Counted from the first letter of the stretch, positions 12,803 through 36,900 are shown. The stretch: 64,000 bases of DNA from Rebecca billardiae RCC1528 (GCA_965240325.2 OZ251246.1:124001-188000), one strand, 5' to 3'. Program-made: numbers and translations. Notes: a model not told the origin generated them from the letters alone.

Positions 12803-12874
12803 GCCCGAGCGTGTCAGCGGCTGCCCCGCCACCGTGCGGTGGCGTTGCGGGCAGCCGCGTCATGAGCCCCGAGC
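12803..12874 (-). promoter_or_regulatory. SECIS element (eukaryotic type II) in the 3' UTR of the ArsS-like gene
   Basis: Minus strand reads GCUCGGG gcuc AUGAC GCGGCUGCCC GCAA CGCCACC GCAC GGUGGCG GGGCAGCCGC UGAC acg CUCGGGC. This gives helix I, a UGAC/UGAC non-Watson-Crick core, a perfect 10-bp helix II, an unpaired AA and an apical minihelix, about 100 nt after the TAG stop. Confidence 0.9.
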
Positions 12875-12974
12875 CGCTTGCGCCGCTCGCGCCGCTTGCG
12901 CCGCCCCCGCCGCGCTCCCTCCCCGCCTCGGCCCCGGCCCGGCGCGCTGCTGCGGCAGCAGCAGCGCGGCGCGC

Positions 12975-14275
12975 CTAGGCCAGCTCGCCCTGTCAGCTCG
13001 AGCCCGCCCCCGCCGTGCAGCCCCAGCAGTGCTTCGCCAGCTGGATGCGCTCCCCCGCCAGCTCTGCAAACGAGGAGCGCAGCGCGTGCACGGACGCCTT
13101 GGCGGGGTGCGCGCGCGCCAGCTCGAGGGCGTAGTGGAAGTCGCACTCGTGGATCGAGCCTGCGCGGGGGGGGGGGAGGGGGGCGCGCGCGGGGCGGCGC
13201 CGACGTCGGCGTCGCGCGCGCGCGCGCTTGCGCGTGCGCGTGCGCGTGGCAGGCGGCGCGCGCGCGCGCGTGTCGCACCGTCGTGCGCCACGTGCACCAT
13301 CGAGCGGCACATCACGCCCTCCACGGTGTGCGCGTTGAAGGAGGCGACGAGCAGCTCCATGTACGCCTGCAGCGCGCCCTGCTCGAGCAGCTCGTCCGCG
13401 AACCGCTTGATCGGCATGTTCGTGATGCAGAACAGCGAGTCGAACTCGATGCCCCAGTCGGCGCGCAGCCGCTGCCGGTACGCCGCCTCGAGCTCGGCCT
13501 GCGCGGGCGGCAGGAAGGGCCCCGCCGGGTTGTACACGAGGTCGAGCCGGAGGGCGCGGCCGCCGGAGCGGCCGTAGCCGAGGGCGTTGAGCTCCTGCAG
13601 CGCGGCGATCGAGTCGAGGAACACGCCCGAGCCGCGCTGCTTCTCCACGTTCGCCGACGAGTAGCACGGCAGCGACGCGACCACGTCCACGCCGTGCTGC
13701 GCGAGGAAGGCGGCGGTGCCGTCCATGCCGCGCTGCCGCAGGATCGAGAGGTTGCACCGGTCGATCACGCGGAGGCCGAGGGCGCGCGCGCCGCGGACGA
13801 GGGTGCCGAACGCCGCGTGCATCTCCGGCGCGCCGCCCGTGATGTCCACCGTCTTGATCGACGGCGAGTTGGCGAGCAGCTCGAGCACGCGCGCCGCGAC
13901 CTCTGCCGACATCGTCTCCGCGCGCGAGGGCGACGACTCGACGTGGCAGTGCGAGCAGGCGAGGTTGCACGTGAGGCCGATGTTGACCTGCAGCAGCTCG
14001 GGCATGCCGCGCGTCGGCGCCGCGATCCCGCGCTCCGCCAGCGTCGCCGCCAGAGACGGCACCTCGACCGAGTCGAGCGAGCGCTTGGGCGCGCGCTTGG
14101 CGGTCAGCCGCTGCCACGTCTGCGTCGCCTTCGCCGCGCGCGCGGCGGCGCCGGGCGCGGGCTGCGGCGTGGGCGCGGCGCGCGCCGTCGAGAGCAGCCG
14201 CGCGCGCGGCGGCGCGGCGAGGAGCAGCAGCGCCGCGCCCCCGCCGCCGCGGCCGAGCACGCGAGCGCGGCGCAT
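12975..14275 (-). CDS. arsS: ArsS-family (arsenosugar biosynthesis / DUF3641 Cys-rich) radical SAM selenoprotein; exons 14275-13279 and 13159-12975; Sec at UGA 12995-12993
   Basis: LQVNIGLTCNLACSHCHVESSP (CxxxCxxC), DITGGAPEM, IDRCNL, VVASLPCY, KQRGSGVF, LVYNP, TNMPIKRF and VMCRS. A GT-AG intron at 13278-13160 joins HDG|SIHECDF. The C-terminus is HCWGCTAGAGSS(UGA)QGELA-TAG, where homologues have GSSC/U. The N-terminus is Arg/Ala-rich and presequence-like. Confidence 0.9.
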
Positions 14276-14446
14276 CGCTTGCGGCGGCGCGCGTGGATCG
14301 ACGCCCGCGATGGATGCCGCACCCGCAGCCGAAAGCCTTGAGGAGCAGTCGGGACTCGGGACTCGGGAGCGTCTCTCCCGGACTTCCTCGCACCGTCTTG
14401 CACGCGGTGACAGCCTCAGTGGTCCTGACGACGACGAACCGTGAGA

Positions 14447-15418
14447 ATGCACGGCACGCCGGTGTGTGTCAACGGTCTTCGGGGACGAGACGAGGCGGAC
14501 GACGACGACCAGTACGCGCCGGGCCCTGCGGCCGTGATGAAGCGCGTCGCCGACGCTGCGTGCGCCATCGGCATGCAGGTGCTCGTGGACGAGGCGCCGC
14601 TCGTCGAGTACGCGCACGCGCCGAGCGGGCGCGTCTACGTCGAGAGCAGCCTCGACGCGCGCTCCTCGTACGTTCGCACCTCGCGCGAGCTCAACCCGTG
14701 GGGCGAGGAGGAGGTGCGCGAGCTGCCGGTCACGCCGTACAAGGTGAAGGTGAGCAGCGCGGTGGACGAGCCAGTGTGGCTCGAGGTCGCGATCGACGGC
14801 ACGCGCATCCACTACGCCTATCTCGGCCCGCGCGCCCAGCGCGTCGTGCCCAACATGATCGTGGGCGGCGTGTGCCGCGAGCTGCTCTTCTCGATGCCGC
14901 GGTACCGCGCGGCGGGCGAGGCGGCGGACGGCGCGGGCGCGGGCGGCGTGGGCACGATCACGGCGCGCTTCTACCGCACGCGCAAGACCGGCGCGGACTT
15001 CTCGGGCGCGCACGTGCACGACGCGTCCGGCTTCACGCAGGCGCACAAGGACGCCGCGTTTGCCGCGGCCAAGCGCGACGGCGGCGGCGGCGCGGTGAGC
15101 ACGACCGCGACTGGCCGCGTGCTCGGGCGTGCGCCGCAGCAGGCGGCGGCGTGGCGCGACCACTACACCATCGACTCCGTGCCGTTCGCCGAGCGCACGC
15201 TGCACTACCGCGAGCACTCGACGCTCGAGCAGCTCGGCGTGCTCCCGAGCGAGACGGCCGCGACCGCCTGCCGCGAGCTCCAGCCCACTGCCGGCGCGGG
15301 CGGCGACTCGCGCTCGGCGGTGAAGCGCGAGCGGCTGGAGGGCGTCGGTGGGAGCCGCCGCAAGGTGAGCAAGGCCAGCACGCAGCCGCCGGTCGTGATC
15401 GACCTGTGTGACGACTGA
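14447..15418 (+). CDS. Hypothetical protein with C-terminal SUMO-interacting-like motif (VVIDLCDD); resembles a beta-rich family seen in fungi (DUF7918-like, tentative)
   Basis: Intronless ORF with strong GC3 bias. Motifs VLVDEAPLVEY...YVES, VAIDG, GTITARFYR and LHYREHSTLEQLGVLP. Alternative start at 14537. Confidence 0.7.
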   Translation: MHGTPVCVNGLRGRDEADDDDQYAPGPAAVMKRVADAACAIGMQVLVDEAPLVEYAHAPSGRVYVESSLDARSSYVRTSRELNPWGEEEVRELPVTPYKVKVSSAVDEPVWLEVAIDGTRIHYAYLGPRAQRVVPNMIVGGVCRELLFSMPRYRAAGEAADGAGAGGVGTITARFYRTRKTGADFSGAHVHDASGFTQAHKDAAFAAAKRDGGGGAVSTTATGRVLGRAPQQAAAWRDHYTIDSVPFAERTLHYREHSTLEQLGVLPSETAATACRELQPTAGAGGDSRSAVKRERLEGVGGSRRKVSKASTQPPVVIDLCDD

Positions 15419-15884: not shown

Positions 15885-16690
15885 ATGCTGCTCCGCGTCG
15901 CCCGGCGAGCGCTGTCGACGTCGCTCACGCCGCCGGTGCCGCGTCAGCGCGCGGCGGTGCGCGTGCCCGCGACCAGCGCCAACATGGGCCCGGGGTACGA
16001 CTGCCTCGGCATCGCCCTCGGCGAGTACAACACGCTGATCGTCGAGCACAGCGACGCGTTCGAGCTGAGCATCGAGGGCGAGGGCGAGGAGGGGCTGCCG
16101 CGCGACAAGAGCAACTACTACTACCGCGCGTTCGAGATCGGGTACAAGGCGTCCGCGCCCGCCGGCGCCGCCGTGCCCGACGTCGCCATGCACTGCGTGA
16201 ACGCCATCCCGCCCGCGCGCGGCATGGGCTCCTCCTCCGCCTGCCTGGTCGCCGGCATCTCCGCCGGCTTCGCGCTCAACGGGTACGACGTGAGCGACGG
16301 CGCGACGCGGATGCGCGTGTACCAGCTGTGCGCGGAGCAGGAGGGACACCCGGACAACGTCGCGCCCGCCGTGTACGGCGGCCTGCAGCTCTCCTTCCGC
16401 CCGGGCCCCGCCCTCCCCTGGCTGGCGCAGCGTGTGCCCGTGCTCGGCGACGTCTCCGCGGTGCTCTTCATCCCGGACTTCGAGCTGCCGACGAAGGAGG
16501 CGCGCGCGCTGCTGGCCGACGAGATCCCGAGGTGCGCCGCGGGGCGGGGCGGGGCGGGGGGGGGGGGGGGGCGGCGGCGGCGCGTGCGCGCTTGCTCCGC
16601 CCGCGCGCTCGCGCGCTCACGCGCGCTCGCCCCTGCCATCCGTGCGCCTTTGCTGCGGTTGCTGCGCCTGCTGCCGCGCCTGCTGCCGCG

Positions 16691-16740
<50 letters not shown>

Positions 16741-17179
16741 GCGCAGGACGGACGCCGTCTTCAACATCAGCCGCGCGGCGATGCTCGTGCACGCGTTCGG
16801 CCAGGGCAGGCTCGAGCTGCTGCGCTACGGCGCGGAGGACGCTCTGCACCAGCCGCAGCGCGGCACGCTCTTCCCGCTGCTGCCGCTCATCAAGGGCGCG
16901 CTGCAGGGCGGCGCGCACGGCGCGTGGCTCAGCGGCGCGGGGCCGACGGTGTGCGCGGTGGTGGGCGGGCAGGGCGAGGGGCACGGCGCGGACGCGGTCA
17001 GCCGGTACGCCGCCGAGGAGGTCGCGGAGTCCATGCGCGCCGTCGCCGCCGCCGAGGGCGTCCCCGGGCGCGTGGTGATCACGCCGATCGTCGAGGACGG
17101 CGTCTGCCTCGCCGAGGACGACGACGACGACCTCGAGAGCGAGCTGCACGGCATGTACGACACGCCGCCGCGCAAGTGA
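15885..17179 (+). CDS. thrB: Homoserine kinase (GHMP family); exons 15885-16531 and 16747-17179
   Basis: VRVPATSANMGPGYDCLGIAL, IPPARGMGSSSA, EGHPDNVAPAVYGG, EDALHQPQR and LSGAGPTV. A GT-AG intron at 16532-16746 gives EIPR|TDAVFNISR. The leader MLLRVARRALSTS looks mitochondrial. Confidence 0.93.
16693..16739. repeat. (CTG)n microsatellite inside the thrB intron
   Basis: Pure ctg run just before the acceptor AG. Confidence 0.85.
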
Positions 17180-33900: not shown

Positions 33901-36900
33901 TGTAGTTGGCGATGAAGCGGCGCTTGCCCGCCACCGCGAGCTGCAGGTACGCCGCGTCGTTCGTCGTCACCGACCCGTCCAGCGTCGGGTCGAGCTGCGA
34001 GAGCCGCCACGCGCAGAAGCTGCCCACGTTGTACTCGGACGAGCCGAGCACGACGAGCGCCGCGACGCGGATGTCGAACGAGGTGAAGGCGCAGTCGCCC
34101 GAGACGTCGCCGTACACGCGCTCGGTGCACGGGTCGCACGACTGCAGCCGCCGCGCCGCGCGCGCCGCCGCGCGCGCGCCCGCCGCGCGCCGCGCCGCGG
34201 CGAGCGCGGCGCGCGCGCCGAGCCGCGCGTCGGCGGCCTCGGGCGGCGCGCCGAGGCGTCCACCCGACGGCGCGCCGGCGGCGGGCGCGCCCGCCGCGTC
34301 GGCGAGCGCGCGCCGCGCGGCCGACACGCTCGCGACGCCCGCGCCGGCGAAGATGTCGGCGTTCTGCGTGCGCGTGGTCTCGCCCGAGCCGTCCTGCGTG
34401 ACGAGCTCGACGATCGTGCCGCTGAACGCCGCCGAGCCGGTGGCGAGCACGTCGAAGGTGATGGTGCCGATCTGCAGGTACGTGCCCGCGTCGGTCGAGG
34501 CGGTGTCGTCGCCGACGAGCAGCACGCGCGTCACCGGGTCGTTGATCGTGCACGTGGCCCACGCGAGCGAGGTGGCGCAGCCGGAGGCCTGGAGCAGGCT
34601 CGAGTCGAGGAAGATCTCGATCTGGAAGTTGACCAGCTTCTCGCCGCCCGTGTTGGCGTACACGCCCACGGAGAGTTGTGAGCCCGACTGCGCAAACTGC
34701 AGCCCGGCGCTGTCGCCGAGGTCGACGTCGTTCACGGCGGGCCGGAGGTTGGGCGAGACGGTCACCTGCAGGTCGGCGGCGGAGGCGCCGGCGGGGAGCG
34801 CGGCGTCGCACGCCCACGCGACGGACGCCGTCGTCGCGCCCGGCGCGTTGCCCTGCAGCGTGAGCACGCCCTCCGCGTCCACGCTCACCGCATCCGTGTC
34901 GTCCGAAGCGAAGTCAAACAGCTCGGCCGTGGGCACATAGAAGCCGCTGCCGGCCGCGTCGTCCCAGACGGTGCCGTCGTCAAAGGTGACGGCGACGCCG
35001 AGCGCGCGCGTGGTGCCCTGCTGCCCGACGAGGTCGAACGCCTTCGCGCCGTTCGACGCGCGCGAGAGCACGAGCTGCGTCGGCTGCACGGGCGTGGACG
35101 CGTCCACGGTCACGCCGAGCGTGCTGCCGAGGCTCAGCCCCTGCCACAGCACGTCCAGCTGCGTGACGCCCGCGCCGACCGGCCGGAGCTCGGCGGCGGA
35201 GACGGTGGCGACGGCGGCGTCGGAGGAGGAGAAGGTGGCGGCGCTCGTCACGTCGACGACGCTGCCCGCGACGTCGCTCAGCGTCACGCTCGCCGCGAGC
35301 GCCGCGCGCTGGAAGGACGACGTGCAGCCGATCGCCGAGAGCGTCGTCGCGTCGACCGCCGCCGAGCCCGAGTACGCGGGCGAGGGCGAGGCGAAGAGCG
35401 CGATGGACGCGACCTCGACCAGCTCGATCGTGAGCGTCTTGTCGCCGTCGAAGCCGGGGACGAGCGCGGCGAAGAGCGGCACGCGGCCGTGCACCGTCAG
35501 CGACGACGGGCACGCCGGGTTGCTCGCCGCGCCCGCGATCACGCTCAGCACGTTGCCGCTCAGGCTCGCGCACTGCTCGGAGCCGTCGTCCGCGCTCAGC
35601 GTGAAGTTGGCGCGCGCGTCGGTCGAGAAGTCGACGGTGGTGTCGTCGTCGTACGTGACGAGCATCGTCAGCGTCGCGCCGGTGGGCAGGCTCACCGGCG
35701 GCTGCGACGCGCCCTCGGACGGGTCGGCCACGCGCGCCGCGGACGCGCTGAACGTCGAGATGGCGGTGGGCGCGGGCACGGCGATCGCCACGCGCGCCGA
35801 GCCAACGGCCGCGGCGCCGCCGGCGGAGGCGCACGCGACCCACGACGCCTGGAGGAGGGGGCCTGACTGCGCGATCGCGTTGGTCGCGACGGTCGCGCGC
35901 CACGCGTCCTCCTCGCCCACGCCGCGCGACAGCTCGAGCGACGCCGTCGTCGAGCTGAGCGCCAGCTCCGCGTGCGGCACCGGCTGCACCGAGCCGTCGG
36001 AGAGCGTCGCCCACGCAAACACGCGCGCCTCGTCGCCCTCCGCGTCGAGGAGCTGCGCGAGCGCGAGCGTGGGCTGCACCGCGTCCTCGTACTCGGGCGA
36101 GGCCTGCGGCGCGCTGCTCCACGCCGTCTCCTCCGGGTTGAGCGCGACGACGCTGAGCGACGTCACGTTGGCCGCGCTCGCGCCCAGCGTGAGCGTCGCG
36201 GGCGTCGCCGCGCCCGGCGCGCCTCCGGAGAGGCTGACGTTGGTCGAGCCCGCGCCCGCGCCCGCCGCGCCGGACACGTGCCACACGCCGGTGGTGCCGT
36301 CGAAGCTGACGCTCGCGAGCGCGCCGTCGTCGCTCGCCAGCGTCACCTCCGCGGACACGTCCACCAGCCCGTCGGCGAAGCCGGCCGCGAGCGCGGCCGT
36401 CGAGCCGGCGCCGCCGTCCGAGTTGTCGTAGGAGAAGGCGGCCAGCAGCCGCGCGCGCGTGCGGCCGTAGGGCGCGTACGGCGCGGTGCACTCGGCGGAG
36501 GCGGAGCGGAGGAGGCCGCCGATGGGCGAGAGCGTCGGCGCGTCGAGCTGCACGCGCGCGCGCCGCGGGTACCACACGCGCAGCGGCACCGTGTCGTTCA
36601 CGGCCGCGTCCGCGGCGAGCGCGAGCGCCACGCGCGCCGCGGCCGCGCCCGCCGTGTGCGACGCGTCGAGCGAGAGCGCGCACGCCGAGCTGACGCTGAG
36701 CACGGACGCGTCGGCGGGCGCGTCGGCGAGCGCGCAGGTGAACGTCGAGCCCGCGCTGCCGCTCGCCGGCCCATCCGCCGCGCGCGAGTACAGCACCGTC
36801 CCGGCCAGCGTCGGCGCGTCCGCCGCGCCCGACAGCGGGCCCATGTTGACGCGCTCCGCGTCGCCGCTGCCCGAGACGTAGCCGACGAGGCCGAGCGGCG

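Follow-up and report, generated by a model that had tools for sequence, protein, structure and literature searches.

A probable selenocysteine codon in an ArsS-family radical SAM gene of the alga Rebecca billardiae

The stretch of DNA analysed here, referred to as the window, comprises 64,000 nucleotides from the GC-rich alga Rebecca billardiae RCC1528 (GCA_965240325.2 OZ251246.1:124001-188000). Its minus strand carries a two-exon gene that can be assigned to the ArsS family of radical S-adenosylmethionine (SAM) enzymes and that very probably encodes selenocysteine (Sec) at an in-frame TGA close to its 3' end. Exon 1 (13279..14275), delimited by translation and by matches to Pfam and TIGR04167, starts with the ATG at 14275-14273 and codes for some 90 residues of N-terminal extension, then for the CxxxCxxC motif of radical SAM enzymes (residues 103/107/110) and the beginning of the DUF3641 domain. 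On translation it ends in phase 1, its final base, G 13279, opening a Gly codon that is split by a phase 1 intron of 119 nt (13160..13278, with GT at 13278-13277 and AG at 13161-13160). Up to the TGA, exon 2 (12996..13159) reads (G)SIHECDFHY...HCWGCTAGAGSS and supplies the C-terminal part of DUF3641. In the minus-strand frame ...HCWGCTAGAGSS is followed directly after GSS by the TGA (12993..12995), at the site of the invariant last Cys of the family, then by the codons CAG GGC GAG CTG GCC (QGELA) and the TAG at 12977-12975, which the tails of the orthologues point to as the true stop (12975..12992 for the five codons and stop together). A candidate selenocysteine insertion sequence (SECIS) lies further along the same strand, at 12803..12874, in the 3' untranslated region (UTR).

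The splice model is well constrained. Aligned with six homologues, the residue that closes exon 1 and the one that opens exon 2 stand exactly two positions apart, a gap that fits just the one residue of the split Gly codon, which argues that the model is right. The closest genomic relative, locus L005, is 64% identical and has an intron at the same position, after ...YDG. Inspection showed that the stretch from the TGA to the TAG contains no GT to act as an alternative splice donor. A whole-genome profile search of the 72-Mb assembly found the gene once, its frame being intact. The TGA is almost certainly read as Sec, and gene finders would cut the protein six residues short there.

To assign the gene, the two exons were used as separate search queries. 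Against Pfam, exon 1 matched Radical_SAM (E 1.3e-11) and DUF3641, and exon 2 matched the remainder of DUF3641 (positions 81-130 of 134). The NCBIfam profile TIGR04167, named 'arsenosugar biosynthesis radical SAM (seleno)protein ArsS', has a curated equivalog cut-off of 300 bits. Exon 1 alone passed this with 323.2 bits over positions 8-244 of 303 (326.3 bits in the whole-genome search), and exon 2 added 44-49 bits over profile positions 248-298. In a stop-tolerant search of the whole genome the match to exon 2 extended, with '1 TGA', as far as position 303. We compared the protein with a homologue set consisting of the 119 best full-length database matches. The cluster motif, C103, C107 and C110 within CNLACSHC, is invariant in 119/119, as are C174, C204 and C323 of exon 1 and C5, C44 and C47 of exon 2. 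The Cys-rich DUF3641 domain at the C-terminus was found to end in CxGCxxGxGSS-C/U, the last position being either a Cys or the end of the sequence. The identification as an ArsS-like radical SAM protein, proposed in an earlier note on this DNA, is thus supported by profile and motif alike. A characterised ArsS carries out the adenosylation of dimethylarsenite to 5'-deoxy-5'-dimethylarsinoyl-adenosine (DDMAA) (PMC13598754). From the family assignment and the work on the bacterial enzymes it would seem likely, though well short of assured, that the protein also functions in arsenosugar synthesis in Rebecca billardiae.

The residue following GSS is a Cys in 83 of the 119 homologues; the other 36 entries end there, at GSS or GST, and nothing else occurs. 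The Cys forms continue for 5-7 residues past this Cys, with endings such as CGGALR, CGGSLT, CSGATI and CQGATA. A review of prokaryotic selenoproteins gives the TIGR04167 motif as GxxU, which is the same site as here (PMC13188914). The earlier note had read the open frame as stopped by UGA 12995-12993 at the last Cys of the family, with read-through giving QGELA and then TAG, and had foreseen that standard annotation would truncate the protein; the alignment with the Cys homologues agrees with its placing of the codon, and the 36 short entries are truncated in just this way. These entries (P0003-P0026, P0032, P0038-P0040, P0048, P0056, P0066, P0068, P0074, P0075, P0078, P0083, P0086, P0088 and P0091) are probably mis-truncated selenoproteins, judging from where they end. 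One cluster among them has 87 member sequences, from marine metagenomes.

Orthologous DNA could be inspected at eight loci from different assemblies. All eight have TGA at this codon, followed by 4-5 codons and then TAG or TAA; in all, nine independent loci from different lineages show the pattern. The tail after the TGA reads QGELN in L005, QGEL in both L007 and L041, QGETR in L001, QGSLN in L008, TGATA in L010, QGQTV in L042 and QGATV in L043. Between the window and L005 the nucleotide identity is 75% over the 60 nt leading up to the TGA and 81% over the TGA and the 18 nt after it, falling to 33% over the next 100 nt; two of the differences are synonymous (GGC/GGG and CTG/CTC). This collapse of identity after the TAG implies that selection ends at the TAG and not at the TGA. 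By these comparisons the five codons after the UGA are shown to behave as coding sequence across lineages, in keeping with the read-through that had been proposed.

The candidate SECIS was identified by folding, by pattern scanning and with two covariance models, R1 and R2. In the fold, a 7-bp helix 1 (12874-12868 with 12809-12803) leads to an internal loop in which the ATGA (12863-12860) stands opposite a GA (12815-12814). Helix 2 (12858-12849 with 12826-12817) has 10/10 pairs and is followed by an unpaired GCAA containing, 12 nt beyond ATGAN, the AA (12846-12845). The structure is completed by a mini-stem (12844-12838 with 12833-12827), 7 bp long with a loop of 4 nt, which marks it as type II. 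A type II SECIS about 100 nt downstream was what the earlier note had described, and this holds up well, with the ATGA 132 nt past the UGA and 112 nt past the TAG. The minimal spacing reported between UGA and SECIS in eukaryotes is around 50-110 nt, which the 132 nt exceeds.

The folding energy of the hairpin on its own is mildly unusual (z -2.2). A pattern scan of both strands of the window (128 kb) gave two matches, of which only 12874-12803 has the 10/10 helix 2, the other being one poor 36-nt candidate; 60 shuffles that kept the dinucleotide composition of the window yielded 0.63 loose matches and none with a 10/10 helix. As the rigid scanner misses true SECIS elements with offset internal loops, a more flexible scanner was then used. 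R2 was built from six SECIS elements of the same genome, belonging to two GPx, two Rdx, one SelT and one SelO gene, with no ArsS element included. It scored the ArsS hairpin at 20.5 bits (E 0.006 in 164 kb) with every modelled pair standard, so that the element matches the genome's own SECIS. R1, likewise derived from the SECIS of other genes, gave 17.9 bits. The SECIS of the distant ArsS orthologue L010 scored 20.7 bits with R2 (E 0.0057 in 164 kb). The weight of the R2 score comes from the element sitting 132 nt downstream of the one codon concerned; the chance of such a match on the correct strand within a few hundred bases downstream of this codon is roughly 1 in 50,000.

The best match to R1 and R2 in the window (22.5 bits) lies elsewhere, at 36294-36352 on the minus strand. 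It was rejected as a false positive as it falls within a 13,409-codon frame, contains two broken pairs and has no AA. This single open frame (23759-63988, minus strand) spans most of the window, and weak matches to the SECIS models cluster inside it at 35-37 kb, where they are false positives in GC-rich repetitive coding sequence.

All the ArsS orthologues for which 190 nt or more of 3' sequence is available have a single ATGA in the 300 nt that follow the UGA; it lies 64-136 nt downstream and opens a hairpin. Three of these hairpins, in L010, L041 and L042, are convincing, with z values reaching -7; the covariance models gave that of L042 only 11.9 bits.

The genome contains the machinery that decoding of the UGA as Sec would call for. 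A tRNA-Sec was found at 72 bits and identified by ARAGORN as tRNA-SeC(tca), and SepSecS was found at 357 bits. Three GPx and two Rdx genes carry an in-frame TGA, and a SelO gene ends ...TUSS. The SECIS elements of these other selenoprotein genes share [A/G]TGA-C, a helix of 9-12 bp, the AA and the GA, with compensatory changes in 5/9 pairs. The SECIS of the SelO-like gene, whose frame ends ...DIVLT-U-SS, lies at L033:1501-1562 (+) (G000:C8:2693330-2693391) and has ACCAUCC in place of the AA, so that it appears to lack the unpaired AA. A GPx gene at L021 (G000:C5:1074567-1077890), on the minus strand, has the classic Sec codon in ...NVASK-U-GLT; neither the pattern scanners nor R2 found a SECIS in the ~1.1 kb past its stop. 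The Rfam model SECIS_1 (RF00031) is below its gathering score everywhere in the 72-Mb genome, despite there being at least eight UGA-plus-SECIS genes. Its sole genome-wide match, at a sub-threshold 27 bits, is the SECIS of SelT (C1:499814-499880).

ArsM converts As(III) to dimethylarsenite, one step before ArsS. The genome contains an ArsM gene (NF008823, 289 bits against a cut-off of 263) at L037 (G000:C18:722038-725748), and this also has an in-frame TGA, at L037:1597-1599 (-), in the context ...EALAC-U-VAGAPEP. An ATGA-type SECIS at L037:704-766 (-) scores 22.1 bits with R2 (E 0.00022 in 7.4 kb). In ArsM structures the residue before [VL][AG]GA is an arsenic-binding Cys, to which this Sec may correspond; the alignment to the PDB structure ended 18 residues short of it. 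On the evidence of their codons and hairpins ArsM and ArsS, which are consecutive enzymes, would both be Sec-encoded in the Rebecca billardiae genome, and in that case both steps between arsenite and the adenosyl-arsenical would hinge on the supply of selenium.

Taking these results together, we consider it very probable that the window holds a nuclear gene of the ArsS family in which the UGA encodes Sec. The SECIS would recruit the Sec-specific elongation machinery, so that the ribosome would insert Sec at the UGA and stop six codons on at the UAG, giving a protein that ends ...GSS-U-QGELA. Such an enzyme would be expected to commit dimethylarsenite to the arsenosugar route by attaching to it the 5'-deoxyadenosyl group of SAM. 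Several observations weigh against this interpretation or against parts of it. Rfam SECIS_1 gives no match to the hairpin at E values up to 10. Taken genome-wide, the R2 score of 20.5 bits corresponds to an E of 5.5 per 144 Mb, which is not significant alone, and only 150 first-look candidates were scored. R1 and R2 miss the hairpins of L001, L005, L008 and L043, which are irregular, with a long mini-stem, bulges and no clear AA, and for these irregular orthologues the positional conservation of the ATGA hairpin is suggestive only. The ArsM gene is on contig C18 and does not neighbour ArsS. Lastly, the function in arsenosugar synthesis derives from the name of the family and from work on bacterial enzymes, and the role of the Sec residue is inferred only. 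The silence of SECIS_1 at ArsS is uninformative, since the model reaches its cut-off nowhere in this genome. Adjacency of ArsM and ArsS is a feature of cyanobacteria, and clustering of this kind is not expected in eukaryotes.

The simplest alternative is that the TGA is an ordinary stop, with ArsS ending at ...GSS and the hairpin being due to chance or belonging to an unrelated structure in the 3' UTR. Gene callers make this assumption, as the database entries that end there testify, and the lack of genome-wide significance of the SECIS model score and the silence of Rfam SECIS_1 would be in line with it. However, the Cys is invariant in every homologue that is not truncated; in nine lineages both the 4-5 codons beyond the TGA and the place of the stop that ends them are conserved, with similarity ending at the TAG and not at the TGA; and an ATGA hairpin is present at a similar distance in all the orthologues with enough sequence. 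We therefore regard an ordinary stop as very unlikely. The conserved tail would also be accounted for if the UGA were read through without selenium, by a near-cognate Cys, Trp or Arg tRNA or in response to a recoding signal other than a SECIS, so that the protein would be full length and contain no Sec. Against this, the genome has dedicated machinery and several other genes with a UGA and a SECIS, and the ArsS hairpin carries the ATGA/AA/GA signature common to those genes; moreover, if Cys were to be inserted a TGC or TGT codon would suffice, as it does in the 83 relatives. This explanation seems to us marginally less probable even than an ordinary stop.

It is scarcely credible that decay into a pseudogene, faulty assembly or contamination from bacteria explains the gene. 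Most members of the family are bacterial, and among the closest named relatives are bacterial metagenome-assembled genomes, but the gene has a spliceosomal GT-AG intron, at a position common to a relative, and a SECIS of eukaryotic type in its 3' UTR. It is also present once, with its frame intact, on a large contig (the window being C30:124001-188000 of the 72-Mb assembly), and the same TGA recurs in nine independent assemblies.

What the Sec residue might do can be considered from its position. It lies three residues before the end of the Cys-rich domain at the C-terminus, in a tail for which model confidence is low. The AlphaFold2 model was made for a natural Cys homologue, P0031. This had a mean predicted local distance difference test score (pLDDT) of 89.8 and a predicted template modelling score (pTM) of 0.90, with the last seven residues, the Cys included, averaging a pLDDT of 48. 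Searching for solved structures yielded none of an ArsS, the best sequence match in the PDB having an E of 1.4e-05. The nearest folds are those of the SPASM/twitch radical SAM enzymes BlsE, SkfB, SuiB, EpeE, PqqE and MoaA, with template modelling (TM) scores of ~0.5. We tentatively suggest, at rather less than even chances, that the Sec acts as a mobile selenolate, which would capture trivalent methylated arsenic and present it to the site of the 5'-deoxyadenosyl radical. It would also fit for the residue to bind, or lie next to, an auxiliary Fe-S cluster of the kind found in the SPASM/twitch enzymes. We favour arsenic capture over the cluster role because the Sec at the putative arsenic site of ArsM offers a parallel.

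A maximum-likelihood tree was calculated with the columns of the C-terminal motif excluded and with a single row left out, P0001, which covers only exon 1. The clade containing the ArsS sequence of the window consists of five Sec-type and 27 long Cys-type sequences (Shimodaira-Hasegawa-like approximate likelihood ratio test, SH-aLRT, 98), and one of the five Sec-type sequences is from the transcriptome of a dinoflagellate. A second clade has 31 Sec-type sequences, mostly from marine metagenomes, together with seven Cys-type sequences that include a cryptophyte and a trebouxiophyte. Within this sample of 119 sequences all 36 of the Sec type fall in these two eukaryote-like clades, and all 49 of the short, bacterial-type sequences are Cys forms. 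The tree requires four switches between Sec and Cys, at least two of them forced by well-supported branches.

The ArsS family and its Sec site are already known in bacteria, as the earlier note had stated for some members of the family. The bacterial selenoprotein (TIGR04167, rSAM_SeCys; given with the motif GxxU in PMC13188914 and PMC9312934) has the same Radical_SAM and DUF3641 composition and the same Sec position, G-S-S-U near the C-terminus. The algal gene differs from it in being nuclear, in having an intron and in its N-terminal extension of ~90 residues. The means of recoding is also different: the type II SECIS of the algal gene is in the 3' UTR, 132 nt downstream, whereas the bacterial SECIS adjoins the UGA. 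Among algal proteins, a 'methyltransferase' selenoprotein of the ArsM type has been known since the selenoproteomes of Ostreococcus and Thalassiosira (PMC2375036). This is likewise a bacterial-type arsenic enzyme with a UGA and a 3' UTR SECIS in marine algae, and it acts just upstream of ArsS. However, it has another fold, carries out SAM methyl transfer and bears its Sec within the catalytic domain instead of in a tail at the C-terminus.

The position of the Sec has another counterpart in thioredoxin reductase, where Sec is part of a C-terminal GCUG tail that shuttles electrons as a selenenylsulfide. As in ArsS, only a few residues separate the Sec from the C-terminus and the tail that bears it is flexible, so that little of the protein is lost in annotation and the error is easily missed, but the folds are unrelated.

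Whether the algal ArsS family has already been catalogued is, in our estimation, an evenly balanced matter. A 2020 catalogue of algal selenoproteomes lists a family named 'FeS oxidoreductase (FeSoxR)' (PMC7539508), and this and the algal ArsS may be the same family; the earlier note had allowed for such a prior listing. In favour of this, UniRef names a green-algal ArsS homologue 'Fe-S oxidoreductase'. On the other hand, in bacterial lists by the authors of that catalogue 'Fe-S oxidoreductase' denotes a GlpC-like family, and TIGR04167 appears as 'Radical SAM domain protein' (PMC13188914). The terms 'radical SAM', 'arsenic' and DUF3641 are absent from the text of PMC7539508. The 2007 lists for Ostreococcus and Thalassiosira contain no ArsS; the 'hypothetical proteins 1-3' of Ostreococcus were considered as candidates and rejected, being PUB-like, PITH-like and membrane proteins instead. 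In the open-access full texts searched we found no paper that names a eukaryotic radical SAM or ArsS selenoprotein, and none that links ArsS, selenocysteine and arsenosugars. The joint dependence of ArsM and ArsS on selenium appears not to have been pointed out before in the searchable literature. The most far-reaching reading would be that eukaryotic ArsS is an uncatalogued selenoprotein family, widespread in marine algae and present in at least two clades, which together with the Sec-containing ArsM makes the whole route from arsenite through adenosyl-arsenicals to arsenosugars selenium-dependent in ocean phytoplankton, with the Sec of the tail capturing trivalent methylated arsenic. As a whole this is doubtful, and we consider it unlikely that every part of it will hold.

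In marine algae and in seafood, organic arsenic occurs mainly as arsenosugars and arsenolipids, for which the product of ArsS is the first committed intermediate. If it is true that ArsM and ArsS both need Sec in marine phytoplankton, then the supply of selenium should shape the speciation of arsenic in the sea. ArsS would also bring a radical SAM enzyme into the selenoproteome of eukaryotes, whose other members are mostly thiol oxidoreductases. There is a practical consequence as well, in that automatic annotation drops an invariant residue of the catalytic domain, and expression constructs, structure models and pathway surveys based on such entries would be wrong.

The genes next to ArsS in the window are on the plus strand, and neither can be linked to arsenic or selenium. 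The nearer of the two, which is divergent to ArsS, is a 325-codon frame at 14441-15418 with only a sub-threshold match to DUF7918. The next gene, at 15885-17078, contains a GHMP-kinase N-terminal domain and is by appearance a homoserine kinase.

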